Assembly (NCBI GenBank): GCA_950097015.1
Contig: CATNEN010000024.1
Location: 1,240,001-1,304,000 of the forward strand
Direction: 5' to 3'
Source: Macrostomum hystrix
Taxonomy: Eukaryota > Animalia > Platyhelminthes
DNA: 64,000 nucleotides
The notes beneath the pieces were generated by a model, which saw only the letters and a program-made list of their open reading frames with translations, had not been told where the DNA came from and did not search any database. Shown piece after piece: positions 2,370 through 52,105 of the stretch (its first letter is position 1; each line of letters starts with the position of its first letter). A program made the translations under genes and the position numbers.

Positions 2370-2762
2370 CATCAACGCGTTTGCCTCTCGCACCACGGTC
2401 CCTAAGTTCGATTCCACGGCGAGGCCACATTTATTTGGGGCGCAGCCGCAGAGGGAAGGCTTGGTGGCTTGTCGTGCAATTTACGCCCTTGAGGACCAAC
2501 CTCCAATATACAGGGAAGTGTACACTGCCTGACGATGAGAAAGTCAGGCCGGATGTACACACCTGTGTGAGCGTATCGCTGCGTACAGTATATGAGTGCG
2601 TGTGTGCTCAGGAGTCAGCGAAATGGGCAGAATTGCCTCCTCGCTGGCTGCGGGTCTAGTGTCACCAAAGGATGTGCAATTGCCCGCAGCCCTCCTGCAA
2701 TTATTATTTTTATTATTACTATTATTTTTATTAATACTATTATTATTATTACTATTATTATA
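2370..2762 (+). mobile_element. tRNA-derived SINE family 1, copy 1 (head slightly truncated, (ATT)n tail)
   Basis: B-box-like AGTTCGATTCC at about 2406-2416; body closely matches the inverted copy at 18200-18575 and the copy at 20158-20380; ends in an attattatt tail. Confidence 0.75.
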
Positions 2763-3189
2763 GAGTGCTCCGAATATGCTATGCTCAAAATACTTTGCTC
2801 ATAGGCCACACTCCATCGTTACACTCCGTAGTTCATGTCCGCAACAAAGACCGGCTATATTGGATCGTCGCGTTTCAAGCACATGTTTAATAAGACAAGC
2901 GACAACAAAAGCTTGTGAGTAGATCGCTCAGGTGGCGGAGTCTAACGGCCAGGAGCATTGTAGCGGGGAAAAATCCAGTACTTCAATGAGAGTTGGACTC
3001 GAGAAACTCATATTTGAAAATGCGAATAACTTCCATGCCACAGAGATATATACACTTAAGGAATTTTCAGTATTCGCTATTGGACAGTTTAATTATTGTG
3101 ATTCACGCTTGAAATAGTGCAAAATATACAGGTGCAACCAAGTTCTCTCTAAACTTGGTAATTTGGGTAAATTTCTCCCGTCTGTCCCG

Positions 3190-4430
3190 TATCACATCTC
3201 CCCCCGTATCATCTCTTCCCTATCTCATATCTTACCGTCCTATATCTCCCCGTCTCATACCTCCCCTGCCTCATCTCACCCCCTGCCTCATCTCCCGGCC
3301 CGGTCTCATCTCTCCCCCCGTCTCATCTCTCCCCTGCCTCATCTCTCCCGTCTCATCGCTCCCCTGCCTCATATTTACCCCTTTCTCATATTTACCCCTG
3401 TCTCATATCTTCCTGTCTCATATCTTCCTGTCTCATATCTTCCTGTCTCATATCTTCCTGTCTCATATCTTCCTGTCTCATATCTTCCTGTCTCATATCT
3501 TCCTGTCTCATATCTTCCTGCCTCATATCTTCCTGTCTCATATCTTCCTGTCTCATATCTTCCTGTCTCATATCTTCCTGTCTCATATCTTCCTGTCTCA
3601 TATCTTCCTGTCTCATATCTTCCTGTCTCATATCTTCCTGTCTCATATCTTCCTGTCTCATATCTTCCTGTCTCATATCTTCCTGTCTCATATCTTCCTG
3701 TCTCATATCTTCCTGTCTCATATCTTCCTGTCTCATATCTTCCTGTCTCATATCTTCCTGTCTCATATCTTCCTGTCTCATATCTACCCCTGTCTCATAT
3801 CTTCCTGTCTCATATCTACCCCTGTCTCATATCTTCCTGTCTCATATCTTCCTGTCTCATATCTACCCCTGTCCCATATCTTCCTGTCTCGTATCTACCC
3901 CTGTCTCATATCTTCCTGTCTCATATCTACCCCTGTCTCATATCTTCCTGTCTCATATCTACCCCTGTCTCATATCTTCCTGTCTCATATCTACCCCTGT
4001 CTCATATCTTCCTGTCTCATATCTACCCCTGTCTCATATCTTCCTGTCTCATATCTTCCTGTCTCATATCTTCCTGTCTTATATCTACCCCTGTGTCATA
4101 TCTTCCCCTGTCTCATATCTTCCCCTGTCTCATATCTTCCCCTGTCTCATATCTTCCCCTGTCTCATATCTTCCCCTGTCTCATATCTTCCCCTGTCTCA
4201 TATCTTCCCCTGTCTCATATCTTCCTGTCTCATATCTTCCCCTGTCTCATATCTTCCTGTCTCATATCTTCCCCTGTCTCATATCTTCCCCTGTCTCATA
4301 TCTTCCCCTGTCTCATATCTTCCCCTGTCTCATATCTTCCTGTCTCATATCTTCCCCTGTGTCATATCTTCCTCTGTCTCATATCTTCCTCTGTCTCATA
4401 TCTTCCCCTGTCTCATATCTTCCCCTGTCT
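3190..4430 (+). repeat. CT-rich 15-17 bp minisatellite (tctcatatcttcctg)
   Basis: Homogeneous 15-bp core at 3410-3780 flanked by variant units; source of the spurious 436/438-aa ORFs. Confidence 0.95.
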
Positions 4431-5299
4431 CTTGTCTTTCCTTTGCCATACTTTTTTCATATTAAATTCAGCCGATTAGACCCGACAATAATTATCCGTT
4501 GTCGGTTGTCACAATAACAAAATAACTGTCTGTCCATTGTTGTCTGTGTTTAGTTTATTTAGTTTAACAAGCAAGCCTTTAGTTTAGTCGTACTATGCAA
4601 CAAGTCTACCTGCATGTAATTATAATTTTTTTTGTGTGTCTTGCAAATCCAATCCAGCTGATTCAGTTGAAAAAAATTAACCGTAGTACAAAGTTTAGTT
4701 TCATGAAAGTAGGGAAACTGAAATATAAAAGCATCGCGCACTGCTCGTGTGAGCAGTATCTGCATGGGCTGCACTATTCATCCCGATCCCAATGACAGCA
4801 ATCAAAACTAATTTTGTTTGAACTATATGAGAGTTTGAAAAATGAGTCTATAAGAGAGCTAGCTTATGACTGCTGCCCATAGCATTCTTTAGGAAAAGTC
4901 ATTCTCTCGCACCCCAGCAATGCCTAGGCAACTGAATTAATGATGCTTACTTAATTCTCCCTCCAATGGGCTGGTCTCCTGCTTCCTCAGACTCCAAGTC
5001 GGTCGCTTTCCTGACTTATTTGTTTGAGTGCTTGTTTTTTCCTTGCCGTAGAAAGTTGTCCACCCAGATAATTTCGAAAATTTTGATTTCACTAACAAAA
5101 ATCAATGCATCCACGACGACATTCTACTCGGAACAATCGAGACAAAATGACAGAACTTTAACTTGTAACGCAACAGTTTAATATTCTTGCAATTCGAATT
5201 AGACAACCTGCCTTTTTTAATCAGGCTTCGGCAACCAACAAACCGAATGGAGATCAGGCCATCAAACCCAGTAAGCTGCAACTCTCTCCTATCGCCTCT

Positions 5300-6250
5300 A
5301 TCGTGTCTCATATTTCCCGCGTCTCCTCTCTTCACTGCCTTTTCTCACTCTCTCTCTCCAGTCTCATCCCTCTACTGTCTCATCTATATCCTGTCTCATC
5401 TATCTCCTGTCTCATCTCTCTCCTGTCTCATCTCTCTCCTGTCTCATCTCTATCCAGTCTCATCCCTCTACTGTCTCATCTATATCCTATCTCATCTCTC
5501 TATTGCCTCATCCCTCTACTGTCTCATCTCTATCCTGTCTCACCTCTCTCCTGTCTCATCTCTCTCCTGTCTCATCTCTCTCCTGTCTCATCTCTCTCCT
5601 GTCTCATCTCTCTCCTGTCTCATCTCTCTCCTGTCTCATCTCTCTCCTGTCTCATCTCTCTCCTGTCTCATCTCTATCCAGTCTCATCCCTCTACTGTCT
5701 CATCTATATCCTATCTCATCTCTCCCCTGTTTCATCTCCTATCTCATCTCTCTATTGCCTCATCCCTCTACTGTCTCATCTCTATCCTGTCTCATCTCTC
5801 TCCTGTCTCATCTCTCTCCTGTCTCATCTCTCTCATGTCTCATCTCTCTCATGTCTCATCTCTCTCCTGTCTCATCTCTCTCATGTCTCATCTCTCTCCT
5901 GTCTCATCTCTCTCCTGTCTCATCTCTCTCCTGTCTCATCTCTCTCCTGTCTCATCTCTCTCATGTCTCATCTCTCTCATGTCTCATCTCTCTCCTGTCT
6001 CATCTCTCTCCTGTCTCATCTCTCTCCTGTCTCATCTCTCTCCTGTCTCATCTCTCTCATGTCTCATCTCTCTCCTGTCTCATCTCTCTCCTGTCTCATC
6101 TCTCTCATGTCTCATCTCTCTCATGTCTCATCTGTCTCCTGTCTCATCTCTCTCATGTCTCATCTCTCTCCTGTCTCATCTCTCTCCTGTCTCATCTCTC
6201 TCCTGTCTCATCTCTCTCCTGTCTCATCTCTCTCCTGTCTCATCTCTTAC
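5300..6250 (+). repeat. CT-rich 16-bp minisatellite (tctcatctctctcctg)
   Basis: Direct inspection; source of the spurious ORFs at 5187-6417. Confidence 0.95.
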
Positions 6251-9117
6251 TCTCCACTGTCCATCCGGCCCGATGTCGTCAGTTAGCTGGTAGATTGTCT
6301 TTTTGGGCCTGCGAGGTGGTATGTGATGTTGCCGACTTCTGCTTCAGAACACTAGAAGATAGACTGTTATATTTATGTATGGAGCCTTACTTTAGTTGCA
6401 GCATTTCTTACAAATGACACTCATCGCATGTCGCATGCATGTATTCGTAGCAAAGCTTTTTTCTACAGAATTAAATAAACGGAAAGTATAAGAGGTTATT
6501 TATTATCTTATTAGTTTTTTCTATGCATACAATTTTTACATTTTTTATTTTGTAGTAACTTTTCACTGTATACATATTTTTAAAAGAGATACGTGAGATT
6601 TGAATACAGTCCTGTATTTATTTTTTCAATGGATAATTAACTAGATAGAACACTGTAAAAATGGTGTTAGAAGTCACACGGGTGCATTGTAAGAATCACT
6701 CATTGTAAATACCAACTTGTCCAGTTGTTACGCTAAGTGATATATTTGTTTTCACCCTGCAAGTTTCCTATTTCGCTCTAATTCTGTCTTTGATATCTTA
6801 ACCTTGCCTTCTGATTGGTCCGCAGCTGGCCTCTCAGCCTTATTCTCTTACCCTCTGTCGCGCGCTCCACCCCATTTATCTCGCCATGCACAGCCAATCC
6901 TGCCTCAGTAGAAGTTTAACGATTAATATCTATTGGTCAGGGGACTTTCAAGCTATAGTTTTGCTACCTTGCAGCCAACGATATTATTTTCGTCCTCATC
7001 GTAATTTTTTGTATTTTTTCTCTGAATAATGTCAAGTGCAACAGTATTATTATTATAACGAGCTAAGAAAGCGAACGGATTCTGAATTCAAGCAGTTTCT
7101 AATTCTGTGAGTAAACCCCACCCCGACCAGTCAATCTCTTTCATCACGTGCTCCGGCTACCACTGGAGCTATTGTCCTCTCTGGGGAGTTTTGAGCGGAA
7201 TGCAGTGCCTGAGCTAGTGGGTGATAAAAAGGAATGCCAAACTTTCCATTCTCTATGCAATTTTCGTGCTCGCTTACCTCCGCAGGGAGGGGGGCAAGAC
7301 TGAGCGGGGAAATCGAAATAGAAATCAGAGGGAACGAGAGAGAGAGGAAAATAAATGAGATTTTTCATGAGGACCATCCGCCTAATGTAGGCCGCCCACA
7401 ATTCCTTTCCGTGTCCAGCGCGCAGCAGTTTCTGCAACTCACTTTTTATTTCCTTCTCCCTGCTGCGTGATTGCCGCCTTTCTCTGTCTCTATACTGATT
7501 TGAGAAAGCTGGGTAGTCCAGAAAATCTACGAGCGTAGCCCTTCTGAGATTTGAGCTGAGGCAGTGTGCTCAAACTACATAGTACTCAAAGCGAACGGCG
7601 GCTAATTCTAATCCTCACCCTAATAGCTTTAGATTTGCGTAGCTTAAAATGCTATGGCTTGTACTCTGTTGATTTCGTTTGGATACCGGAAGTTAATTAA
7701 ATGGTGATTTTAATTTGCGTTAAGGTTCGGCTACCTCAAGTTTAGGGCCTGATAACGACCGCAAAACTCCCATTTTTCCCCTGCTCGTCCATCTCATATC
7801 TCATAACTCTCTCTCATCTGGACATTGTGTCTCATCTCTCCTCGGTCTCATCTCTTCTCTGTCTCATCTCCTGTCTTATCTCTCTCCCTTCTCAAATTCA
7901 TGCAGTCAATGCGGTCCGCTTTCGTTTTTCATGTTCTCTCCGCGGCCCGCACGCTAATAAGTTTGCCAACCCTGTTTCACAGCATCAACCGTAAAGTGCA
8001 AGTCGTTGTATTCTCTAATCTATTCAGTTACACCATCCGCTGTATGACCGTACGCGTTGAAGTTTCAGTTTAACAACCCCATTGTCCCACAAATAATTAT
8101 TTATTGCCCCATAAAACTGGGAGAAAGGTTCAGAACTTACACAGCCAGAATAAAGTTATTTCTCGAATTAGCCACAGAAAGTTTAACGGGAGCTTATGAG
8201 CTGAAATCCCTTTGATAATTAATGCCCCAATGTGGGTTTAAGAAAATACAACCGAAGTAGTATGCAGAGTACAGTACGTGTACTCGCGGGCCTACCACCC
8301 ATTCGATATTCGAGCATGACACAGTTAAGCTGAGCAAAACGAGCTCCTTTTGAGTTTAGGCATGTGGAGCCGGCATTAATCAACTTAGTGGCTGGGGGGT
8401 GGGTGATTGAGCTGCACGCTGAGCATGCTTATGGAAACTGAAGGCTGGAGGCCTGGCATCTACACTGGGATTGGGATTGCAGGAAGACTGCATAAATATT
8501 ATAGATGTCCGGCAGTGTGCGTGCGTGTGTGTGTGTGTGTGTGCGGCCTCCTGATCGATTCGTCAGAAAAAGCCACAGACCAGCCATGATTCCCGGCTGA
8601 AAAGGCCGGGGATCGCGATTATTTTGGGATATCGCCCGAGGTTTGAGCAGTGGAGCTGGGAGCAGGCAGTGAGGGGGGACTATTTGCTAAATTGCTAGTC
8701 CGCCGCACGCAGGTGACGTCAAGTCATCGGCCAACCTGCAGGAGAGCTGAGGCCGGCTGTCAAGCCGTCTCTTTCTCTCCCCTCCTCTCTTTCAGTATCA
8801 ATAGTATACTTCCCATTGCCTATCCTAAATCCCATAGTTCTTTCCCCAGCCCAATTCACGGGCGCAGGGAGGAAGTTGGGAAATTCAGGCAGAGTTAAAG
8901 CGATCAAGGCCTGAGCCTTCTGAACAACGGCCGCCCGCTGAGTGAGCGAGTGTTCCTGACAGCCTACCACAGATCCCGCAATTCTGAGCACCAATGAGCA
9001 CTCGACGGCTCGCCTGGGTCAGTCCATTGACGCTTGAGAAAAGCTTTAGGGGATAAATACATAACCTACTCAAACTCAGCCATTGACTATCAGAAATCGG
9101 TTTGGCCGCGGCTAGAG

Positions 9118-36774: not shown

Positions 36775-37385
36775 TGCTGAATAGTTGGCGTACCAACTGG
36801 CTGAATAAGTTGGCCTACCAACTGGCTGAATAGTTGGCCTACTAACTGGCTGAATAGTTGGCCTACCAACTGGCTGAATAGTTGGCCTACCAACTGGCTG
36901 AATAGTTGGCCTACCAACTGGCTGAATAGTTGGCCTACCAACTGGCTGAATAGTTGGCCTACCAACTGGCTGAATAGTTGGCCTACCAACTGGCTGAATA
37001 GTTGGCCTACCAACTGGCTGAATAGTTGGCCTACCAACTGGCTGAATAGTTGGCCTACCAACTGGCTGAATAGTTGGCCTACCAACTGGCTGAATAGTTG
37101 GCCTACCAACTGGCTGAATAGTTGGCCTACCAACTGGCTGAATAGTTGGCCTACCAACTGGCTGAATAGTTGGCCTACCAACTGGCTGAATAGTTGGCCT
37201 ACCAACTGGCTGAATAGTTGGCCTACCAACTGGCTGAATAGTTGGCCTACCAACTGGCTGAATAGTTGGCCTATCAACTGGCTGAATAGTTGGCCTACCA
37301 ACTGGCTGAATAGTTGGCCTATCAACTGGCTGAATAGTTGGCCTACCAACTGGCTGAATAGTTGGCCTACCAACGGGCTGAATAG
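36775..37385 (+). repeat. 24-bp minisatellite
   Basis: Unit actggctgaatagttggcctacca, about 25 near-identical copies. Confidence 0.95.
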
Positions 37386-38544: not shown

Positions 38545-39411
38545 GCTGAAGATTCACGTGGCAGGCCTAGTCGACGCAAAGCTGATAATGAGGCGGCAGG
38601 CAATCCAGTGAAAAAAGTGTAAAAAAAGTCGGCTGCTGAGTCTACTGTGCATTCAAAAGTCGAGTCCAGCGACTCGCAGAATATTGTGCTTGCTGCTCAG
38701 CCCTCGGTGGATGGCTCCAGAGACCCGCAGCCCAATGGTGCTGCTGCTCAGCTCTCGGTGGATGGCTCCAGAGACCCGCAGCCCGATGGTCCTGCTGCTC
38801 AGCTCTCGGTGGATGGCTCCAGAGACCCGCAGCCCGATGGTCCTGCTGGTCCCGATGGTCCAAGCGACGTCAAAACCGTTCTAGACAAGCTACTTGCCAC
38901 TCGCGACGCTGCAGCGGATTCGAATCCGTTTGTTTTTGCTAATCATGGAACTACTGATAGTTATCTCTCACCGTACCGGACTCGAACCAAGATTATTAGC
39001 CAAGTCCCAGGTCTGAAGCAGCCAGCCCGAATTCAATCAACAAAACTAAGAAAGTATGTTGGAACAGTAGTGCAGCTAATGGATCTGTCCAAACGTGACT
39101 TAAAATGGGTGTGTGATCACATGGACAACAAACTCGCTGTTCACCGAGACTTTTACCAATTACAGAGGTCAACTACCGAGGTGGCAAAAGTTAGTAAAAT
39201 TATGCTAGCAATGGATTCAGGCAACATTGAAGGCCTTCATGGCAAAGATCTTGACTCTATTACTCTCGATCAAATCCCTGAGCCAATTAATGACGATGAA
39301 GAGGACGACGATGATGATGGCGACGACGAAGACAAAGAAGGACATGGCCAGGCACCAGCGCACATGCACAGGAAATTGACAGGTTCTCCAGGGCCCCATA
39401 CCTCACGATGA
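38545..39411 (+). pseudogene. Tyrosine-recombinase gene fragment (copy A): repeat-containing N-terminus joined directly to the C-terminal half of the YR domain
   Basis: Acceptor at 38544; in-frame TAA at 38620-38622; three 51-bp/17-aa repeats; then NPFVFA...IQSTKLRKYVGTV...DHMDNKLAVHRDFYQL...EVAKVSKIMLAMDSG, homologous to copies B and C. Box-I Arg region absent and LGH replaced by MDN. Confidence 0.75.
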
Positions 39412-39779
39412 CAAAGGGCGAAAGAAGAAGAAGAAGACAAAGAAGGACCAGCCTGTCCAAAGTGGCCCGTCCTGGGCTGTCCTGGGCTTCCTCAAGTGGC
39501 CCAGCCTTCACGAGGCGGGAAGCGGACGGGGCATCAGCCCTGGCAAAAAGGACCACAACAACAGAAGGGAGATGGAAGGAGGGAGTGGGCGCAGGCCCAC
39601 CCCGAATCACCAACCCTTTTTGGCAACGACGACAGGAAGTAGCCGACCCTGGCGTCGATAAAACTAAGGCCAACCAACCCTGGAGAAGAGGAGGAGAGCG
39701 GAGGACGGAGGGAGCAATGTGCAACGACGACGAGAGACGGGCAGCAGGAGAAATTAAATGGAGACTGGCGACAATCGAA

Positions 39780-40190
39780 AAGAACCCGGGACCTAAAACG
39801 GTGCAAGAGAGAAAAGCGAGACAGATTAGACAGAGCAAGGGAGGCCTGGCCATACACCAAAAACGTATGCACTGCAAACAGACCGAACCCGTGACGTTCA
39901 CGTGCCAGAAGTGCGCGAAAATTTTCGCCAAGAGGCCACCCTCAGAAATCATTTCAAAGCCTGCCTGGGAGAACGCGAAGAAGCGCCGGATACTGTCACC
40001 TGTACCGGATGCAAAAAGATGATCAGTAAGACCAACCTGGCGCATCACAGACGGACCTGTAATCACCGGATCGCTATAGTTCACATAGATCAAGTCAACG
40101 AACCTGGATTCCTCGAAAAAGCTAGAAAACACACTAGGAAGACGAAGCAGTGTGTCTCATGCGGCCGCGTGCTGTCGGCCAGTGGATGTA
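39780..40190 (+). mobile_element. Frameshifted tandem Zn-finger fragment, probably the 3' end of a non-LTR (RTE-like) retrotransposon
   Basis: With one frameshift near 39930 it reads SKGGLAIHQKRMH...CQKCAKIFAKEATLRNHFKAC...CTGCKKMISKTNLAHHRRTC...CVSCGRVLSAS. The RTE assignment is from recalled family architecture; no RT domain is visible. Confidence 0.45.
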
Positions 40191-40445
40191 GCCTAGTGGT
40201 TATAGTAGTCTTAGCGTCTATAGCGTCTTATAGCGTCTTACTCCTGACCCACGGGAACAATTTTTAAAGTTTTAGTTTAAAAAAAACTACTTATTGCTTC
40301 AGTTCACTCAGCTGCAAATGGGTACCAGCATTGACCGGAAATTGAGGGTGGGTGCAGTGGAGACCTCCCAGTCCACTGCTAAACGTAGCCTTCGGATGCG
40401 CCGCGCAATAGCTGTGGCTGTGAAGCACACCTCTGCCCCAGTTTA
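40183..40445 (+). mobile_element. SINE family 2 copy with degenerate head
   Basis: A-box-like ggatgtagcctagtggtta at about 40184; core ttgcttcagttcactcagctgcaaatgggtaccagcatt at 40294-40332. Confidence 0.55.
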
Positions 40446-40565
40446 GGCATTGATAGTTACTATATATTATATACTTCAAGAGAAATTGATTCCGCACAAT
40501 ATTAGATGTTGATAACACTTAAGAAACATTTTTTCATATTAGCACTAATTTGGATTCCCTAAATA

Positions 40566-40830
40566 AACTCATTCTAATCACCACCTGCTTTGATATTGTG
40601 TTTCTCTATTTATTCAAACATTTAATCACCACCTGCTTTGATATTGTGTTTCTCTATTTATTCAAACATTTAATCACCACTTGCTTTGATATTGTGTTTC
40701 TCTATTTATTCAAACATTTAATCACCACCTGCTTTGATATTGTGTTTCTCTATTTATTCAAACATTTAATCACCACTTGCTTTGATATTGTGTTTCTCTA
40801 TTTATTCAAACATTTAATCACCACCTGCTT
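40566..40830 (+). repeat. 48-bp minisatellite
   Basis: Unit atcaccacctgctttgatattgtgtttctctatttattcaaacattta, about 5.5 copies. Confidence 0.95.
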
Positions 40831-41782
40831 TAACGTTGCTTAAAATTAACCTGCTCTAATGTGAATAAATAAAGAATTAGAGAAATAAGAGCCACCTACT
40901 TAAAAATTTGTTTCCTCAACGTAGACGTTCATCAGATCTATGATGTTTCTAGAGCACTGCTATTTAGCGCAAAAGGAAGTCTCTGTGGACAAGAGCATTG
41001 ATTCCGGTGTACAATAGAGTGCGAAAATGTTAAGAGATTGGGGAAGTGCTAAAGACCCAGCTGATAATTTCGATCATCTAAGGACACAAAATCCTCGGTA
41101 GTACTAATGGCCTCGTAACCGCGTTGGATTAACGCATGACAGTTGTCTGTTTTAAAACATTAAAAAAGCTATTTTTATACTCTTAAATTGATTTTTCGAA
41201 TTAATATACTAAAAACTAAATTCTATGTATGTATTCGCATGTATCATGCATGTAATTTTTCTTAATTTGTCAAATATTAAAACAAAAACATCTTCAGTTT
41301 TTTGTTTTGCAACTTTACTTTATAAGAATGTTTACATAAAAATAATGAAATAGTACAGGAAGTTTTTTGGTTAATACTTCCACTGAGTATTAACTGAGTA
41401 TTAATTCATAGATAATTAGCGATGTGGTGGAACTGTTGGAACAACCGTCACACTCCTGCTTCTGTAGCTTTTGTACATAGTTTCATTTAAAAGTAGCGTT
41501 TTTTAGTTCCTTCTGCCTATGTTCTGACGTATAACGCAGATATACCATTGGTTCTCGCTAAAACTATGTCCCCCTGCCTTGAGCTAGGACTTTTTCTGAA
41601 ATATGGTATACAAATATGCTTAACTTGTGCTTTTTCGTGTGTGGGAGCAGTCCCAATATGTGCAAGCTTTTGCACACCTGGCCAATAAGTGCCCGGTGCA
41701 CGTTTGTGTGTGTGTACGTGTGTGTGTGTGTGTGTGTGTGTGCAGATGCATAGCCCACTTATTGGTTCGCATTGATGCATTG

Positions 41783-44700
41783 ATTCGCTTCCTCCTGCAG
41801 CTTCACAGACTGCCAAACTGGACGATGTCAGCAGCGCCTTAAATCGATCCGCTGATTCTGAGAGACAAGTCAGCTGCCTTGATTCGCTTCCTCCTGCAGC
41901 TTCACACACTGCCAAACTGGACGATGTCAGCAGCGCCTCCGATCGACCTGGTGAGTCCCGCTTGACAATGCCATATGAATAAGAGCTAAAACAGACCTAT
42001 TTCAGAGTTGAAATATTAAAAACGCATTTCCTGGAACACTGCTGAAAGACACTAAACAGTCGGCATCGTTCAGCTTAGAAGACAGGGCATTGTTGGGACA
42101 TGCAGATCAAAGTGTGTCGCGATAAACCAGGGCATTGTTGGGACATGCAGTTCAAAGTGTGTTTCGATTAAACAGGGCATTGTTGGGACATGCAGATCAA
42201 AGTGTGTTCCGATTCAACAGGGAATTGTTGGAACACAAGATATTATGTAAAGTGCATGCAGGAGTTAAGAGTGCTCAACGTTTTCTCCTTTGTGTGCAGA
42301 TTCGGTTGCTAAGAAAAAGAAGAAGCGAGGCAGCAGCGGCAACGGCCCTTTGGCTCTAAAGTCTGTCAAATTTGACGATGTCAGCAGCGCCTCTGATCGA
42401 TCCGCTAATTCTGAGAGCGAAAGCGTCTGCTTCGATTCGCTTCCTTCTGCAGCTTCACAGACTGCCAAACTGGACGATGTCAGCAGCGCCTCTGATCGAT
42501 TACCTGAGTTCAGGGGCAACGTCGGGACAGGCGTGATGTTTGAGAAGTTGTCTTTTGTTGGCCATTCTCAATGTTCTATTGAGGCTGACGCATTTTTGGG
42601 CGCGGCAGATGATGCTGCAACGTTTGCTCTTCTTGAACCAGTTACTGCAACTTTTACTCGAAGTGGATTGTCTTTTGCTGCTGGGTGCGGTGACCCGTAT
42701 GCTTTGTCACCGTGTGACTCAGCTCAAAGCCTGGTGGATTCTGACTAATCTGGTTCATTGTGAACTAACCGAAGTTCCTGTCGAACACGTTTTACGTGAT
42801 TTTAGCGATCTATCAATGCCATCTCAGATTGTAAACTATGTTAGTACCGAAGAAGTAAAACATCATGAAAGTAGTCTTCATTCTCATCACGGTGATATGT
42901 TTGGCCCTCAGACGACACATGAAGTTTTACCTGAAGGGTGGCTCAACTGTAAGACAAATCGAAGAGAACTCTGAATCTGTAGACTTTGATTTGCCGTGCA
43001 AAGCAGAAAAATGTCAACCTAAAGGCAGTGTAGTTTTGCAGAAGTTTGTTTCCTCGATTACCAAGATCCACCACTGCAAATATTGTGGCAAAATGTTGAC
43101 AAAAATCTCGAGACATTATAAAACTTCTCACAAGAAGGAATCTGATGTTATGTGCATACTTAAGATGCACAACAAGTCACGCCGAAAGAGGGCGTTTAAA
43201 GCTTTAGAAAGTGAAGGCGACTTCGTTCATAATGGAATAGTGTTAGCAAAGCAAGAGGGAGAACTGATAATTGCTAGGCGGCAAAAGGACGATGAAAACA
43301 GTCCGGATGACTTTTTGCCTTGTCATACGTGTTTTCAATTCATAAAAAAATCTTCTTTACCGACACAAGAATACTTGCTCAGGAAGCCTGCACGATATTC
43401 TTGAGGAAGACAGCAATGACAATGAAAGTGAGGATTCAATAGACTCTGCGAAGTCAATGCAGGAAAAAGAAAACCGAAGTGTTTCGACCAAATACTGCCA
43501 GCAGCTGTCACGCCTTCTATTGTCAAATCCGGCAGCGGGATCGAATCTCTTAGATCCTGAGTCAGAACTCTACAAGACCGTGCTGTCGAAGCTTGCTGCT
43601 GACGACGTTTTTCATGTTATTTGTACGGAGGATCTTATTCTTCGTATCGGAGAGCGGTATAGATCAAAGCAGAAGTAGCTCAACCGGCAGCATGTTTCAA
43701 GCGTTATCAGAGATGCTGCACGCATCTTAATCGAGCTTCGGAAAATTCACGGAAATCATAGCTTGAAGCATTTCTTACAGCCACACTTTTTCGACGACTG
43801 GATCGACATAATAAGACAATTATCTAAAGATGCACCATCATTTGCACTTCGAGCAGGAAATTTTATTCCTCATCTATGCAACATAGTGATTGGAGACGCC
43901 ATCCGTAAAGGGGATGATAGTTTAAAAAAGTCAACGTCCGATTTCCTTACGTTGAAAACCACGGAGTACCATCCACTTGTCACCGCTAAATGCTTGAAAG
44001 ACTAAACGATAAAGCATCACGTCCACAGGACTCAGTGCCTCTGACATCGTCGCCGTCTCTACTTTTATTAAATCCGCAATCGCTAGAACAATTGAGGAGG
44101 CAGAAGATGCGCTAAAATATAGTAAATCGTCAATGCCTCGTTTGTATCGCGAGCTTGTTTACTTGGTAATGACAAAACTAGCATTTTACAACCGACGTCG
44201 CTCAAGCGAGATTTCTGAATTGGATTTTGATCTTATAAAGTCCATGCATCAATCCCACACGCATGAGGATTTGCATAAGTACATGTCACCGCTAGAGCAG
44301 AAACTGGCTAGCAGATTAAAAATTGTCAACATAGCAGGGAAGAAAGGCCGCTCCGTCCCAATACTAATTGAACAGCTTTGCTGGAATGGAATCCTTTGCA
44401 TTGAAAAGTGCAGAAAACAGGCCGGAGTCAAGGACAACAACAACTTCGTATTCGCCATTCCGGGCTACGATGAGTCTGTATACCGCTGTTCAGTTGCGAT
44501 CGACCAAGTTGTACGCCTCGGTAACTTGGAGTTAAAGAGACCGGAATTACTACGATCAAGATATTTGAGACGCCACTGCGCTACTGTTTCACAACTGCTT
44601 GATTTGAAGCCAGCAGAACTGGACTGGCTTGCACGGCACCTTGGACATGACATAACAGTTCACAGGCAGTACTACAGAATGCACCAAAACACACTTGAGT

Positions 44701-45668
44701 TGACCAAAGTTTCACGAATTCTGGAAATTATGGACAGCGGAAAACTTGGTCACTTCAAGGGCCGAAAACTCGAGAACATTACTTTAGAAGAAATGGACAA
44801 TGTGCTACCCATCGGAGCCGACGAAATCGACGTAGAAGCCTCTGCGTCCGCTGAACAAAGCAGCCGAAGCGAAGCAGCAGCAACGATTATTCAAACGATT
44901 GCTCGCCTTTAACGGTTGCCAAAGTCAGTCCAAGAGAGTTGGCCTCAGCAATCAAGGTCCAACGACAGCCCAACATGGCGACAGGTCACCACCGTCCAGC
45001 AAAGAAGACGGCATCACAAACAAGTTTTCCCGGAGAGTTGCAAAGGCAAACGCGAAACATTCAAAGAAAGCTTCGAAGTCAGGTGAGGAGACGATAAAAG
45101 ATTCAGCTTGAAATCCTATATAAATAGGAGCTAAAGCAGGGCTAATAAACTTTTCGGTTAATATTAAAAACGCATTTCCTGTAACACTCCTGAAACTGAA
45201 AGACACTAAACAGTCGGCATCTCTCAGCTTAGAGAACAGGGCATTGTTGGGACATGCAGATCAAAGTGTAATGTGATTGTATTGAAAAGCACATTGTTAG
45301 GATATGCAGACCAAAATGTGTGTTCTCATTGTGTGAACTCCCTGATAGTGTTTTGACCGACTTAGTGCTAGGTTATGTTATTGCTGTATGTATGGTAGGT
45401 ATGGTATGGTATCTTATTTAAGTTAGATATTGCAGTGTTCCGCATTGCCTCATTACGTGCATATGTCTACTTTCCTTTTTCAGCAAAGCGGCTCACAGAT
45501 GAACAGAAGAAGGATATGTGCGAGGCATTCGCTGACTTCATTCAGCAAGGCACTCTTCCTGGGAAGAAGGATAATCTGGAGCTGCGGCCTGATTCGATGG
45601 CTAACATTGAATGGAAACAAATCAAAGACAATTTGAGGGTAGCAGTGGTTAAGGCTCGCAACAATTAG
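41783..45668 (+). pseudogene. Intron-containing tyrosine-recombinase gene (copy B), disrupted by several frameshifts and a nonsense codon
   Basis: Exons ?-41950, 42299-45082 and 45484-45668 (phase-1 introns). Encodes HHCKYCGKMLTKISRHYKTSH, FLPCHTC, FYNRRRSSEISEL (box I Arg), AGKKGRSVPIL (Lys), LRSRYLRRHCAT, ARHLGHDITVHRQYY (His, Tyr). Frameshifts near 42750-42960, 43350, 44000, 44050 and 44910; TAG at 43676. Confidence 0.85.
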
Positions 45669-45723
45669 TAAAAGAAGTAATTCGGCTTTCTTGCTTTTCG
45701 GGACTAATAGTTTCAATTATTAG

Positions 45724-48700
45724 ACTGGAGTTGTCGATGTTGGAGACAGCGTCAAGCAGTTGTCCACCAGCACAGAGGCGGCGCCTCCAGCGACTACAGC
45801 AGCTCAACCGAGCGCCATCACAGATCCGAGCCCGTCAAAGTCGAAGAGACTATCCAAGAATAGTAGAAAGCGCAGTGCAGGTGAGTCTCAGAGTCTTTGT
45901 TTCAATCCTCTTACAGTAGGAATAGGGATAATGACTGAAGTTCAGAATGTTGTTGATCAGTGGACAGGGATTATTGGGACACTGTTATTGAGCTACATAC
46001 TTAGATTCGGAGGGACTTTAGGGCTGTGTGGTAGTTTGACGGTAGAACTATTGGGACATGTCGTGTGTGTAGTGCTCTCGAAAGGGAATGAAGTGGCTAG
46101 AGCTTTGTCCTACAACTTCTTGACACTCAAGAAGTCTGAAAGTGTCAAAACTAATTTAAAACCTGCATGATGTTGTTGATTTGATACAAAGCATTCCACA
46201 GGTGAGATGAAATTTGTAAACTCTGCTTTGAAAAATGTTAACACAGGTGCCGGCTCTGACAGTCAGGAGCAGTTGTCCACCAGCACAGAGGCGGCGGCGC
46301 CTCCAGAGACTGCAGCAGCTCAACAGATCGTGTCCAGCGAAACTTCTGCTGCCGGTGCAGCCAACAGATCAGTGGAGTCGAGCGAGCCGACTGGAGTTGT
46401 CGATGTTGGAGACAGCGTCAAGCAGTTGTCCACCAGCACAGAGGCGGCGCCTCCAGTGACTACAGCAGCACAACAGTTCGTGCCCAGCGAAACTTCTGCT
46501 GCCGGTGCAGCCAGCGCATTGTTTAACGGACTTTTGCAGCCAGGCTTTGGAGATGGATGTGCCAGCTACATTTCTCTGAAGGTTGTTTCCGATCCGTATG
46601 CATATTTGGATTGTTCAGCAAGTGGCGAGGTTGTTGACGACCAGAAACATGTCGAATTCTCTGTCCCATCTGAAGATTGTGGTTCGGTTAATCTTTTGCT
46701 AGCTTGTAATTCTGATAATGCGAACTTGGACTTCGCCAATTCCTACTTCGAGGAAGTGGATTTCAATGGTGCTGTTGACTTTAGTGATGCATCAATGCCG
46801 GCGCAACTGGCCCTTTTCGTTGTTGCAACTGATTCAGCTGCAGATGCAGAAGTGCCAAAGTGTTTCAAGGCGTCACCGTGTCGACCGGAGACATCTGGCC
46901 CTGCAGTGGAGTCTACTGGTCCATGTGCTGCACAAAAAGTTGAAACTTCTAGTGCAATGTGCCTAGATGACGAAAGCAATTCTGTTTCAATGCAGCTGCC
47001 TGTATGTGCTGAGAAAAAAGCCGATTGTTCTGTTGTCTTGCAAAAGCTTGTTACTTCGACCACTAAGGCACACAGTTGTAAATACTGTGGCAAAGTTTTA
47101 ACGAAAATTTCTCGGCATTACAAGACGGCACACAGGAAGGAAATTAATGTCAGTCGCATTCTAGACGTTAAGAATAAGGCTCGCCGAAAGCGTGCATTTC
47201 GGGCATTGGAGAATGAAGGAGACTATGTGCACAATAAGTCGGTTCTTGCGAAGAATAAAGGAGAGCTAATCATTGCTAGAAGACAAAAGGACGATGAAAG
47301 TAGCCAATATAAATTTCTACCTTGTCACATATGTTATCAATTTATGAAAAGCGATCTGCTGTATCGTCACAAAGAAACATGTTCCGGTGGCCTCAGTGAC
47401 ATTCTAGAGAAGGATGAAGATGATGAGAATTCCGAACCGGAAGAGGAAAAGCCGTCAAAAAGTCAATCTTGCAAACAATTGTCTCGTCTGCTACTTGCTG
47501 ATTCGAAGCCTGCCTCTGAGCTTCTAAATGCAGAATCCGATTTTTATCAAACCGTTGTGTCTAGGCTGGCTTGCGGTGAAATTTTTGACACCATTTGCAA
47601 TGAAGAACTAATCGTTAAATTAGGAGATCGTTATTTGTCAAAGCAAAAGAAGGTCAACCGACAACATGTTGCAAGTGTTGTAAGAGATGCGGCTCGAGTT
47701 CTCATTGAACTTAGAAATATGCATGGAGAATACAGTCTCTTGCATTTTCTGCAGCCCGTTTACTTCGATGACTGGATTGAAGTAATAAAGAAACTCTCCG
47801 GCGACGCCCTTACGTTTGCGCTTCGCGTCGGTAACTTTCTTCCACACCTGTGCAATATTGTCATTGGAGAGGCAATTAGAAGAGGCAATGACGAGTTAAG
47901 GAAATCGACAGCAGACTTTTTTTGCAACTAAAAACGACCGAATACCATCACCTCGTAACAGCGAAGAGCCTAAAAATGTTAAGCGAACGAGCTGCTTTGC
48001 AACAAGATTTTGTGCCACTTACAGACGACATTGTAATGATCTCAACGTTTATCAAAACTGCTATTCCTCGACGGATTGAAGCACTAATGAATAGAGAAGA
48101 TGACCAGAATCTACCAATTTTGTATCGTGAGCTTGTATTCCTTGTGATGACAAAGCTGTGTTTTTATAATCGACGCCGGTCCAGCGAAATTTCGCAATTA
48201 ACTTTTGAAATGCTTGAGGCTGCAGACATATTACATACGCACGAAGATCTACAATTACCTATCGCCGCTCGAAAAGCAACTAGCCTCGAGATTAAAAGTA
48301 GTAAAAATTTCTGGAAAAAGAGGCCGTTCAGTCCCGATTTTATTTGAAGCGATTTGCTGGGATGCTCTAAAGTGCATTAGGGCTTGCCGCGAGGATGCCG
48401 GTGTGAAGAAAGTTAACAGCTTTGTTTTTGCCATCCCTGGATATGAAAAATCTGTTTATCGCTGCCCTGTGGCTATTGACCAAGTCGTCCGTTTAAGCTC
48501 ACTTGACTTGAAGCGACTTGATCTTCTTCGATCAAGATTTCTGAGAAAGCATTGCGCGACAGTATCTCAGCTCCTGGACTTAAAGGAGCACGAATTAGAT
48601 TGGTTGGCACGTCATTTAGGCCATGATATTGCTATACATCGTCAATTTTACCGAATGCACCAGAACACAATAGAACTGACAAAAGTTTCTAGAATTCTCG

Positions 48701-49439
48701 ACCTACTTGATACTGGAAGGCTTTCGCAGTTTAAAGGTCGTAGTCTCGAGGACATTACACTCGACGAGCTCGAAGAGAAATACCCGATCCGCGGTGACGA
48801 TGTAGCGGCTCCAGTAGAAGCACTAGAAGGCCCAGAAGTTGCCATTCCTAGGGTGGAGATCGGATTCACCAATTCTTCGGCTTCAGTTGCGACCCATTCA
48901 GCTATGTCGTCTGATTGCATGCCTTTGTCTTCTATGGCCACTCAAAAAGCGTCCCCTAAGAAGAAGCCTGCACAAAAGGCCAATTCTGCCTCTAAAAGTG
49001 AGCTAATATTACGTATTTCATATTCTTATGTGGCTTTTAGAGGGAATTTAGAGCCTTAGGCTTACACCTAGTTTATTCGAATATCGATACGTACTTTTTA
49101 TGACGTAGCTAAATCTTAAGAGTAAATGACAATAATTCAACAATTGTATCAAGTAAGTTGATGTATACTATTATGTTAGTTTTTGATGGCGATCTGAAAC
49201 GTACGCTGGCCACCATTTGCAAAATACGAGGGGATAAAAAAGTAATTTTAATTTTGTTTTCAGAAATGCCGCTCTCATCCGAACAGAAGGCCCAAATGTT
49301 GAAGGCCTACAGCAGTTTCATTGCGAAGAAGGTTCTACCAGGAAAAAAAGATATCGACTCTTTTCGGCCTGACAACCTGGTGAATGTTCATTGGAAGCAA
49401 ATTAAAGACAATCTGAGGGTGGCGATAGCGAAAAAATAG
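45724..49439 (+). CDS. Intron-containing tyrosine-recombinase gene (copy C), about 1,030 aa if two compensating frameshifts are corrected
   Basis: Exons 45724-45880, 46247-48997 and 49264-49439 total 3084 nt (multiple of 3). Motifs HSCKYCGKVLTKISRHYKTAH, FLPCHIC, FYNRRRSSEISQL, SGKRGRSVPIL, LRSRFLRKHCAT, ARHLGHDIAIHRQFY; last exon PLSSEQK...VLPGKKD...HWKQIKDNLRVAI. Frameshifts at about 47920 (T7 run) and about 48250. Confidence 0.8.
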
Positions 49440-49499
49440 CAGACTTTTCCCCGTTTTATTGATTTATGAGTAATTTTTCTATGTGAACACTAGCGCAAC

Positions 49500-50182
49500 C
49501 CCAAGAATGTGTGTTCACCGCCATACAAAAGTCTGTGTCCCAACAACTCCAAGAGTGTGTTCACCGACATACAAAAGTCTGTGTCCCAACAACTCCAAGA
49601 GTGTGTTCACCGCCATACAAAAGTCTGTGTCCCAACAACTCCAAGAGTGTGTTCACCGACATACAAAAGTCTGTGTCCCAACAACTCCAAGAGTGTGTTC
49701 ACCGACATACAAAAGTCTGTGTCCCAACAACTCCAAGAGTGTGTTCACCGCCATACAAAAGTCTGTGTCCCAACAACTCCAAGAGTGTGTTCACCGCCAT
49801 ACAAAAGTCTGTGTCCCAACAACTCCAAGAGTGTGTTCACCGCCATACAAAAGTCTGTGTCCCAAAAACTCCAAGAGTGTGTTCACCGACATACAAAAGT
49901 CTGTGTCCCAACAACTCCAAGAGTGTGTTCACCGCCATACAAAAGTCTGTGTCCCAACAACTCCAAGAGTGTGTTCACCGCCATACAAAAGTCTGTGTCC
50001 CAAAAACTCCAAGAGTGTGTTCACCGACATACAAAAGTCTGTGTCCCAAAAACTCCAAGAGTGTGTTCACCGCCATACAAAAGTCTGTGTCCCAATAACT
50101 CCAAGAGTGTGTTCACCGCCATACAAAAGTCTGTGTCCCAAAAACTCCAAGAGTGTGTTCACCGACATACAAAAGTCTGTCC
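49500..50182 (+). repeat. 46-bp minisatellite just 3' of recombinase copy C
   Basis: Unit caagagtgtgttcaccgccatacaaaagtctgtgtcccaacaactc, about 15 copies. Confidence 0.95.
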
Positions 50183-50431
50183 CAAACAACGCCCATAACT
50201 GGACGTTGGCGGAGGCGCTCGAGCATCAAGCTGGCTTGCTGCGCCCGCCGCATTTACGCTCATAATCAAGCAACAACTAGGGGGCGGGGTGACCGGCCCT
50301 TTCGGCTGGAGACCCAAAAGTAATGGGGACCAAGATAATTTTTCACCGAAACAGCCGTCGGAGGGGGGTCCACGATAATTCACATTAGGTCCGCCCCAAC
50401 TCCGCCCGTTCGGAAAATATTTGGTGGGCCA

Positions 50432-51085
50432 CTGTGTGAAACATTTATTCAGCTTTAATTTCTAAACTGGTGTGAAACATTTATTCTGCTTTAGTTTCTA
50501 AACTGGTGTGAAACATTTATTCAGCTTTATTTTCTAAACTGGTGTGAAACATTTATTCTGCTTTATTTTTTAAACTGGTGTGAAACATTTATTCAGCTTT
50601 ATTTTCTAAACTGGTGTGAAACATTTATTCTGCTTTATTTTCTAAACTGGTGTGAAACATTTATTCTGCTTTAGTTTCTAAACTGGTGTGAAACATTTAT
50701 TCTGCTTTATTTTCTAAACTGGTGTGAAACATTTATTCTGCTTTATTTTCTAAACTGGTGTGAAACATTTATTCAGCTTTATTTTCTAAACTGGTGTGAA
50801 ACATTTATTCAGCTTTATTTTCTAAACTGGTGTGAAACATTTATTCTGCTTTAGTTTCTAAACTGGTGTGAAACATTTATTCTGCTTTATTTTTTAAACT
50901 GGTGTGAAACATTTATTCAGCTTTATTTTCTAAACTGGTGTGAAACATTTATTCTGCTTTATTTTCTAAACTGGTGTGAAACATTTATTCTGCTTTATTT
51001 TCTAAACTGGTGTGAAACATTTATTCTGCCTTATTTTCTAAACTGGTTTGAAACATTTATTCTGCTTTATTTTCTAAACTGGTGT
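50432..51085 (+). repeat. 36-bp AT-rich minisatellite
   Basis: Unit tgtgaaacatttattctgctttattttctaaactgg, about 18 copies. Confidence 0.95.
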
Positions 51086-52060
51086 CTTTTACATACTAAT
51101 TATTATAAGAAACGAATTTAGAGCAGCAAAGAATTTAGAAACGAAAATTTAGGGAAAATAAAAAAGGAATACGAGTGCTCGTAGTTGAGGAACAAACTTC
51201 TTTTTTATCTCGTTGGAATCGAAATATAAAGTTAGGTTTTGCCCTTTGAGCGCCTGATGCTTATCTGAGCAGACTCCGCCTCCATTGAATCACTAAACAC
51301 TAAAATTCTTCTCTCCATCTCCATCTTCTCTCCATCTCTCTCTAGATTACAAGTTTAAACAATGTACTTTGTAGCCCTTATTGCAATCGCAAAATATACT
51401 TCACATAGCCTGCTGGCAAGGCAGGCTATTTGAAGAGATAGTGCTTGTCGTATTTGGATAGCTGGGCTTCGGGCTTCGACTTCAGCGGCTGCCTTTCTTG
51501 TCCTCGGCAGTCCGCAATTCGCAATGCATGAGGCAGTTTGAGTGTTGAAATTGACAATGTTCATTATCTGATCTGTATTATGAGACAAGACAATTGAACT
51601 GCATTTTTCTTCTACACACCACGGATGGAAATCGTGGGTCATGGCTGACGTAATTCTATTGGGGCTTGTATGTGGTTTGTGGTTTGTGTGTGGTTTGTAT
51701 AAAATATGGTGCAATGTTTTCCCACATTTTGAGGCCAAGTGATCACTAGTTACAAATTGGTTGTAAGCGATTAAGCAATATTTTCTGAGACTATATTATT
51801 AGTTTGTACGAGTAATGCTCGTTGTTCTGGCTTGCAGTGCAATCTTACGACTGAATCCAGTCTTTGTACCTGAAACATGTCGATAGAAATACACATAGCG
51901 AAGCTGGTTAAAGTAGATATAATGCATTTTGCAATCGAAAAATATTTAGGAATGGAGTGTTGGACGCCTATGTCGGGACGTGTGTGTGTAATTTTTTGTG
52001 TGTGGGAGCAGTCCCCACATTTGCCCGGTTTTGCACACGTGGCCAACAAGTGCCCGGTGC

Positions 52061-52105
<45 letters not shown>

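Follow-up and report, generated by a model that had tools for sequence, protein, structure and literature searches.

Positions 38,545–49,439 of a 64,000-nt stretch of Macrostomum hystrix DNA (the window; coordinates are those of the whole stretch unless a contig or locus is named) hold three sets of co-oriented reading frames, here termed A, B and C, with motifs of tyrosine recombinases (YRs). An initial annotation, made from the sequence alone, had presented them as a tandem array of spliced recombinase genes. We arrive at a different reading, to which we give a probability of about 80%: the locus is a graveyard of Crypton-type DNA transposons, all of which entered one GT-type microsatellite. 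The three "recombinase genes" are, with that same probability, broken copies from different subfamilies of one transposon family which landed in the same direction in a (GT)n tract, and neither a duplicated gene array nor host genes describes them. No intact YR frame is present at the locus. The locus as such is a case of ordinary decay; the family behind it is moderately interesting.

Much of what had been described was recovered. The six-frame listing contains the three frame sets with YR motifs, between 38.6 and 49.4 kb, and A is indeed a fragment. Both B and C carry the FYNRRRSSE, GKKGR/GKRGR, LR[RK]HCAT and LGH..Y (in full, LGHD..H..Y.R) motifs (at 44133-44912 in B and 47922-49059 in C). 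Two Cys/His modules had also been reported: the first, CKYCGK.LTKISRHYKT.H, is found in both copies, but the second is not preserved in B, where a 2-bp deletion near 43349 cuts it. Both copies end in a C-terminal exon behind a GT-AG intron of phase 1, a short conserved frame that closes with WKQIKDNLRVA. The multiply spliced structure of the genes has to be given up. Exon 1 is a single uninterrupted frame of 916-919 aa in three intact copies located elsewhere in the genome, the additional "introns" of the main body of B and C are frameshifts, and a single real intron remains per gene.

When the M. hystrix genome was searched with the catalytic piece of C, three identical uninterrupted 919-aa frames were obtained on contigs C7, C13 and C33, together with B, A and several more distant copies. 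At locus L022, an ATG-to-stop frame of 916 aa holds, in one frame, everything that is split among the pieces of B. The gene regions of the three intact copies differ by 0-0.09%. The elements span 10,578 (C33:3354953-3365530), 12,138 and 13,074 bp, and they differ in length because the gene is preceded by varying numbers of 650-950-bp units in tandem. The intact element measures 10.6-14.3 kb. From left to right, it consists of a conserved terminus of ~140 bp, a leader, an array of these tandem units, which repeat the start of the gene, the single gene itself, a 3′ region rich in minisatellites, and a second conserved terminus of ~80-115 bp, whose last letters, GTTTGT, are directly followed by (GT)n. 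Exon 1 of the gene (2.75 kb) encodes two zinc modules, a helical central segment and the YR domain; a single phase-1 intron separates it from a homeodomain-like exon 2 of 60 aa. An array stands upstream of the gene in every subfamily, with 4-7 units here and 9.7 in Macrostomum lignano; each unit repeats the start codon and the first ~100-200 codons, the layout being conserved but not the sequence. Arrays were seen at L022:1-2900, at 2403-5506 of the C33 element, in L025 (M. lignano) and in the window at 41776-42500 and 45719-46700. They could supply promoters, binding sites or something else.

The ends of the intact copies point to the target. Each copy starts with GCAGATGCATAGCCCAC right after a GT-type repeat and ends in ...GGTGCCCGTTTGT right before a GT-type repeat. 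The repeat is pure GT on C7 and of compound GT/GA types on C13 and C33 (the three variants being pure GT, GTGTGTGTGA-type and GTGTGA-type), and the sequences beyond the repeats are unrelated between the three loci. As the variant matches across each locus yet differs between loci, the microsatellite is the target that was split. All 11 ends examined (three from intact copies, two in the window and six in M. lignano) abut GT-type repeats, and in every one of them the GT strand is the gene strand. Family termini number four left and five right in the whole genome. The window contributes one left-end motif (41742-41765) and two right-end motifs (41681-41707 and 52042-52068). All these left and right termini lie on the forward strand of contigs C7, C13, C24 and C33, which may be chance.

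At the ends of the C33 element, two pairs of sub-terminal inverted motifs were found, matching at 13/14 positions (left 15-28 against right ~46-59 from the end) and at 14/14 (left 90-103 against right ~103-116 from the end). They are candidate recombinase-binding sites. A TTGGGAC/GTCCCAA pair recurs in the M. lignano element.

The M. lignano sister element extends these observations to a second species. Its protein, P0001, shows 65% identity and is encoded at six loci that share at least 99.5% identity. The element measures 14.3 kb, contains an array of 9.7 units of 655 bp and ends in ...GTGCACGTTTGT, followed by (GT)n. At all six loci the element is bordered by (GT)n on either side and keeps the same layout, and the right flanks differ in at least five of them.

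The proposal that the family is of Crypton grade is borne out: it combines a YR fold and a single gene with the absence of reverse transcriptase (RT), and its near-identical copies are dispersed and have defined ends. The YR is the sole enzyme, the dispersed copies have common ends at unrelated sites, long terminal repeats (LTRs) and a classical target site duplication are absent, and a short terminal core matches the target. A genome-wide copy search, which had been proposed as a check, returned the three intact dispersed copies with shared left and right boundaries. The YR gene is the only long non-repeat frame in the intact element and Pfam shows nothing else there; the 10.6-13.1-kb sequence contains no other frame of at least 220 aa, no Pfam RT match and no RNase H, in agreement with the reported lack of both enzymes.

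Copy B, when aligned with the intact copies, is identified as a truncated copy (41742-45718) of this 10.6-13.1-kb one-gene element, of which three intact copies exist elsewhere. Its DNA is 96.9% identical to positions 5457-8768 of the intact C33 copy. In the gene region, the DNA alignment with the intact copies gives 1.8% substitutions and 11 indels; seven of the indels are not multiples of three, all of them upstream of the intron, and relative to the 916-aa protein at least five frame changes are counted. On the left, the terminal 24 nt jump into a tandem unit, so that a leader of ~2.4 kb is deleted and a sub-terminal inverted motif is cut; on the right, the copy ends ~50 nt beyond the stop codon and the last 1.8 kb of the element are missing. 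The last base of exon 1 is 45082, followed by GTGAGG; a pyrimidine tract and CAG precede the first base of exon 2, 45484, and the way the codon is split makes the intron one of phase 1.

Copy C (45719-52068) is assigned by the same kind of comparison to another subfamily, with ~65% identity to the B-type and with its own 3′ region and right end. Outside the gene, only the final ~115 bp are shared by the two types. C-type DNA is otherwise unique in the genome, save for a decayed relative at C33:1818770-1826193, which matches part of exon 1 (83%), the exon-2 region (76%) and the vicinity of the right end (78%). Repeated coding units are seen in the frames at 45731-46459. The reading of the gene passes from frame 1 to frame 3 and back to frame 1, with breaks at ~47920 (within a T7 run, 47917-47923) and ~48252, and the splice sites lie at 48997/48998 (GTGAGC) and 49263/49264. 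Since an independent short-contig public run matches 48081-48281 with zero differences, the second break is no long-read artefact, unless that run is itself the source of the assembly. This was the sole public run matched; it consists of low-depth DNA-like contigs and covers neither the first break of C nor either intron.

It had been suggested that the array arose by head-to-tail amplification, through an old local duplication. If one recombinase gene had been duplicated in tandem and the copies had then diverged for a long time, they would share orientation, gene layout and intron position, as B and C do. We nevertheless hold this to be very unlikely. Copy B lies 1.8% away from copies on three other contigs and ~35% away from C, the non-coding sequences of B and C are unshared except for the terminal ~115 bp, and separate element termini and a (GT)n tract stand between the units. 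That the dispersed copies are assembly artefacts of this locus is excluded by their unique flanks. Because B differs by 1.8% from dispersed copies yet is only ~65% identical to C, the two are independent insertions of different subfamilies.

The B-C composite (41742-52068) could be thought of as mobile in its own right, as a unit of two genes, or as belonging to a larger island mobilised by a YR: its left terminus is B-type and its right terminus C-type, (GT)n flanks it at either end, and the subfamilies share conserved right ends. This too is a very improbable reading, although of the rivals considered it is the one to which we concede most. Neither the B/C junction (45718/45719) nor C-type DNA has a second copy in the genome, bar the one decayed relative; the left end of B is reduced to 24 nt with its inverted motif cut, and both genes are broken. 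As for the single large island that had been envisaged between 35 and 52 kb, it is contradicted by the separate element ends at 41707, 41742 and 52068 and by the debris of a long interspersed nuclear element (LINE).

Domesticated, Crypton-derived host genes kept for a cellular function had been a further suggestion. Catalytic motifs can still be read in B and C, C is nearly single-copy in the genome, and precedents for Crypton domestication exist in animals (PMC3212892). The probability of this explanation is very small, as low as that of local duplication: A is a fragment that lacks a conserved His, seven frame-breaking indels precede the intron in B, two frame changes affect C, and one of the latter falls within the stretch confirmed by the independent run. 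Copy C moreover retains the transposon 3′ region and a right end flanked by (GT)n, and RNA evidence, looked for in public runs, was not found.

To the left of B and C lie the remains of a fourth subfamily, the M-type, and older material (Table 1). The M-type remnant resembles the M. lignano element, with 77% identity in the minisatellite and 92.7% in the right terminus. Copy A (38860-39276), a piece of 139 aa, derives from a distant YR family: it is 37-41% identical to the B-type protein, to P0001 and to a 711-aa frame on contig C15 (41% to the latter), and the His of its LGH motif is replaced (MDN). A LINE, and not A, accounts for the Cys-rich frames at 39.4-40.3 kb. Segment 39486-39839 matches, at 98% identity, aa 59-176 of a LINE frame of 1387 aa with Exo_endo_phos_2 and RVT_1 domains (intact copy at L041:1993-6156, contig C41), and 39822-40192 matches aa 1256-1378 of that frame; the Cys-rich frames at 39.9-40.3 kb are the C-terminal part of its protein. 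At least four long dispersed copies of this LINE exist, with 93-97% identity. An RT-bearing element thus adjoins A, and this could suggest YR retroelements of the DIRS/Ngaro type with a lost or hidden RT. We regard this as the least probable of the alternatives, since the neighbour is an ordinary LINE with apurinic/apyrimidinic endonuclease and RT and with dispersed copies of its own, the intact YR element lacks the frames and the Pfam match that an RT would give, and its ends show no LTR-like or split direct terminal repeats, only the 14-nt sub-terminal inverted motifs. Further left, a 24-bp minisatellite (36776-37385, 25.4 units, 98% matches) yields a long artificial open frame on the minus strand.

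Table 1. Transposon remains and associated repeats in the window
Feature	Position	Strand	Remarks
Copy A open frame	38647-39411	+	YR-like part comprises only the C-terminal half of the catalytic domain
LINE fragments	39341-40192	+	Tail of one copy, then an internally deleted copy; outside the YR elements
M-type (fourth subfamily) 3′ remnant	40570-41707	+	48-bp minisatellite 40570-40833; right terminus 41626-41707
(GT)n tract	41705-41743		Between M-type right end and B left end
B-type left terminus	41742-41765	+	24 nt identical to intact copies; joined straight to 5′ tandem unit
Copy B body	41776-45718	+	Partial 5′ tandem unit, decayed exon 1, intron, exon 2
Copy B exon 1	42281-45082		Decayed
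Copy B intron	45083-45483		GT-AG, phase 1
Copy B exon 2	45484-45668		
C-type 5′ repeat region	45719-46700	+	Left-truncated where it abuts B; B-type similarity stops at 45718
Copy C exon 1	46207-48997	+	Recombinase motifs intact; two frame changes
Copy C intron	48998-49263	+	GT..AG, phase 1
Copy C exon 2	49264-49439	+	Homeodomain-like C-terminal domain
C-type 3′ region	49496-51085	+	46-bp (14.8 units) and 36-bp (18 units) minisatellites; same layout in M. lignano element
C-type right terminus	51956-52068	+	82.6% to last 115 bp of B-type; 87% to right end 41631-41707
(GT)18 tract	52066-52102		Flanks C-type right end

The nature of the recombinase was assessed by structure prediction. The catalytic part was modelled with AlphaFold from a 13-sequence alignment (predicted local distance difference test, pLDDT, 72.5) and compared with 48,161 chains by VIA-align. 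The ten best rows are all YR or topoisomerase IB structures: XerD (Z 10.4, over 158 residues at 3.6 Å), XerH (10.0), staphylococcal integrase (9.9), XerA (9.5), Cre (8.7), topoisomerase IB (8.5) and IntI (8.0), with archaeal Xer and MrpR also among them. In a Foldseek search of the PDB, the first six rows are Xer-type tyrosine recombinases (XerH, XerA and XerD), with weak E-values of 0.06-0.3. Residues R611/R612, K659, R735, H761 and Y770 are conserved across the 13 animal sequences. The distance from H761 to Y770 is nine residues, which we take to be the spacing of XerD as well. On the strength of the predicted model, the catalytic part is a tyrosine recombinase fold.

Sequence searches place the protein in a large family. 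A PDB sequence search, with a single piece and with the 13-sequence profile, returned nothing relevant; precomputed Pfam domains were found in none of the 16 relatives listed by word-based protein searches, and no Pfam model matching the recombinase was obtained with our own frames and about twenty relatives. When the word-based protein search was repeated with a profile, hardly anything new came up. In a language-model look-up, the catalytic part is nearest to unnamed eukaryotic clusters, followed by Phage_integrase, ResT/TelK, ALOG and NDC10 clusters. An exhaustive profile search with the catalytic part recovered 10,083 representatives at E≤0.001 and 2,627 at E≤1e-30; the named members of the family are "uncharacterized" proteins of teleosts and beetles.

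Exon 2, when folded alone, gives a small helical bundle with a pLDDT of 92.6. Against homeodomains, its template modelling (TM) score is 0.64-0.70 with a root-mean-square deviation of 2.4-2.9 Å, and the E-values are non-significant. Exon 2 is thus predicted to be homeodomain-like and probably DNA-binding, which we offer as a lead only. It is conserved at 95% in the intact copy and at 61% in M. lignano, where the gene model P0001 ends in exon-2 residues; in beetle, fish and ant relatives, an equivalent C-terminal domain is contained within the same polypeptide.

A number of points weigh against the reading that we favor. Of the check that had been proposed by profile and by structure, only the structural part came out in favor of a YR (XerD, XerH, Cre and integrases at Z 8-10.4): the Pfam Phage_integrase model (PF00589) matches neither any piece nor the intact 916-aa frame, at E up to 1-10, and DUF3504 (PF12012) gives no match even at E up to 10. 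The first His of the HxxR motif is R or T in the recombinase family, and residues 278-306 of the model, which include H761 and Y770, have a pLDDT below 50. None of the public runs looked up contains RNA carrying the stretch. Distant copies on C15, C25, C38, C39 and C7 (5.0 Mb) have no GT tract or right-end motif in the stretches read, and GT targeting is demonstrated, by the sequence of the element ends, only for the B/C/M clade. Excised circles, empty sites and new insertions were not observed, and the circle-and-integrate mechanism set out below is inferred. The sequence of events at the locus is likewise a reconstruction, both for the insertions and for the deletions, and it needs three later deletions as well as frameshifts.

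Among the distant relatives, the 711-aa frame at C15:153440-155575 (L042:3440-5575, minus strand) is intact; it belongs to a distant YR family and shares 38-41% identity with A and C. It has no Pfam match and no GT tract nearby, and may represent another active Crypton-like family with a different target. Some long fish proteins combine a recombinase-like domain with a SET domain, MYM-type zinc fingers or an ATF7IP binding domain (teleost gene models P0019, P0037, P0041, with SET domain, and P0060, with ATF7IP_BD). These may be real fusions or gene models that have swallowed an intronic transposon. A Crypton-derived YR within an ATF7IP intron of amniotes has been described (PMC3212892).

We propose a mechanism which would account at once for the flanking GT repeats, the single orientation and the stacking. 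The element would be excised as a circle whose end joint carries a short GT-rich core, and the recombinase would then swap strands between this core and a matching core in a chromosomal (GT)n tract. Because the GT and CA strands differ, a single orientation of insertion would result; and because (GT)n is kept on both sides, each insertion would make two new adjoining targets and lead to head-to-tail stacking. The head-to-tail order at the locus would hence be due to repeated orientation-specific insertion into one (GT)n tract. Elements of the M-type, B-type and C-type would have been inserted successively; later deletions would have removed most of the M-type, the leader of B, and the block from the 3′ region of B to the left part of C, after which frameshifts would have killed both the B and the C gene. 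Copy A and the LINE pieces would be unrelated, older debris to the left of the pile-up. That the element is active is suggested by its near-identical copies. Taken together, the proposal that the clade integrates site-specifically and in one orientation into (GT)n via a GT-rich end-joint core, guided by its zinc-finger and homeodomain-like parts, that its insertions accumulate into head-to-tail arrays and that it is currently active seems to us somewhat better than an even bet.

According to Goodwin's model, a Crypton recombines through a short core at its end joint with an identical core in the chromosome; the mechanism proposed above follows this model, with a GT-rich sequence as the core. 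The active element CryptonF-1_cRei of Chlamydomonas bears out this model, as its terminus CACCG matches the target CAYCG, and it causes rearrangements at target sites (PMC9977147). It differs from the elements described here in Crypton group and host, in having a five-bp-word target, and in that its activity was directly observed (PMC9977147). Within CryptonV, which are YR-only DNA transposons, some families are microsatellite-specific (Kapitonov & Jurka 2012, Repbase Reports 12:2034, as cited in PMC8869645). The Macrostomum elements likewise are YR-only and insert into a microsatellite, a likeness between descriptions only; according to that citation, CryptonV was described from cnidarians and is recorded in Repbase Reports only, whereas the Macrostomum elements have flatworm hosts, measure 10-14 kb and contain large internal tandem arrays. 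With CryptonA and CryptonI they have in common animal hosts, a single YR gene, the lack of terminal repeats and the abundance of decayed fossils (PMC3212892). Animal Cryptons are said to lack a C-terminal domain, and CryptonA YRs match DUF3504 (Kojima & Jurka 2011, PMC3212892). In contrast, the Macrostomum elements conserve a spliced homeodomain-like C-terminal exon, absent from CryptonA, and two N-terminal zinc modules, and they do not match DUF3504.

Two further systems share single features with the family. Endogenous nimaviruses contain telomere-repeat-specific YRs that target (TAACC)n (PMC10871703); they too are eukaryotic YR elements inserted into a simple repeat, and their YR has a C2H2 zinc module, but they are giant viral genomes and their YRs are called not close to Cryptons by the authors (PMC10871703). 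The stacking itself has a counterpart outside the eukaryotes. Bacterial integrative elements undergo tandem accretion at one attachment (att) site, the core being regenerated at both ends and the elements being stacked in one orientation. That system is prokaryotic and its attB lies in tRNA or other genes; the target considered here is an abundant eukaryotic simple repeat.

What looked like an array of spliced recombinase genes in an animal is explained by dead transposons, and the oddity is removed. The family provides a clean natural example of a YR transposon that chooses a simple repeat and a fixed orientation, and hence stacks. The protein family of the recombinase is very large in animals: it numbers more than 10,000 clusters at 50% identity, with members in teleosts, beetles, ants and flatworms. 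Its members are named "uncharacterized protein" in genome annotations, where they are sometimes fused to host genes, and a family model would tidy many of these entries. Young copies in two Macrostomum species make the circle-and-integrate proposal testable in a laboratory animal. If this proposal is true, the GT-targeting clade would parallel, in eukaryotes, the tandem accretion seen at the att sites of bacteria, and would represent a programmable-looking eukaryotic integrase system aimed at a ubiquitous simple repeat.

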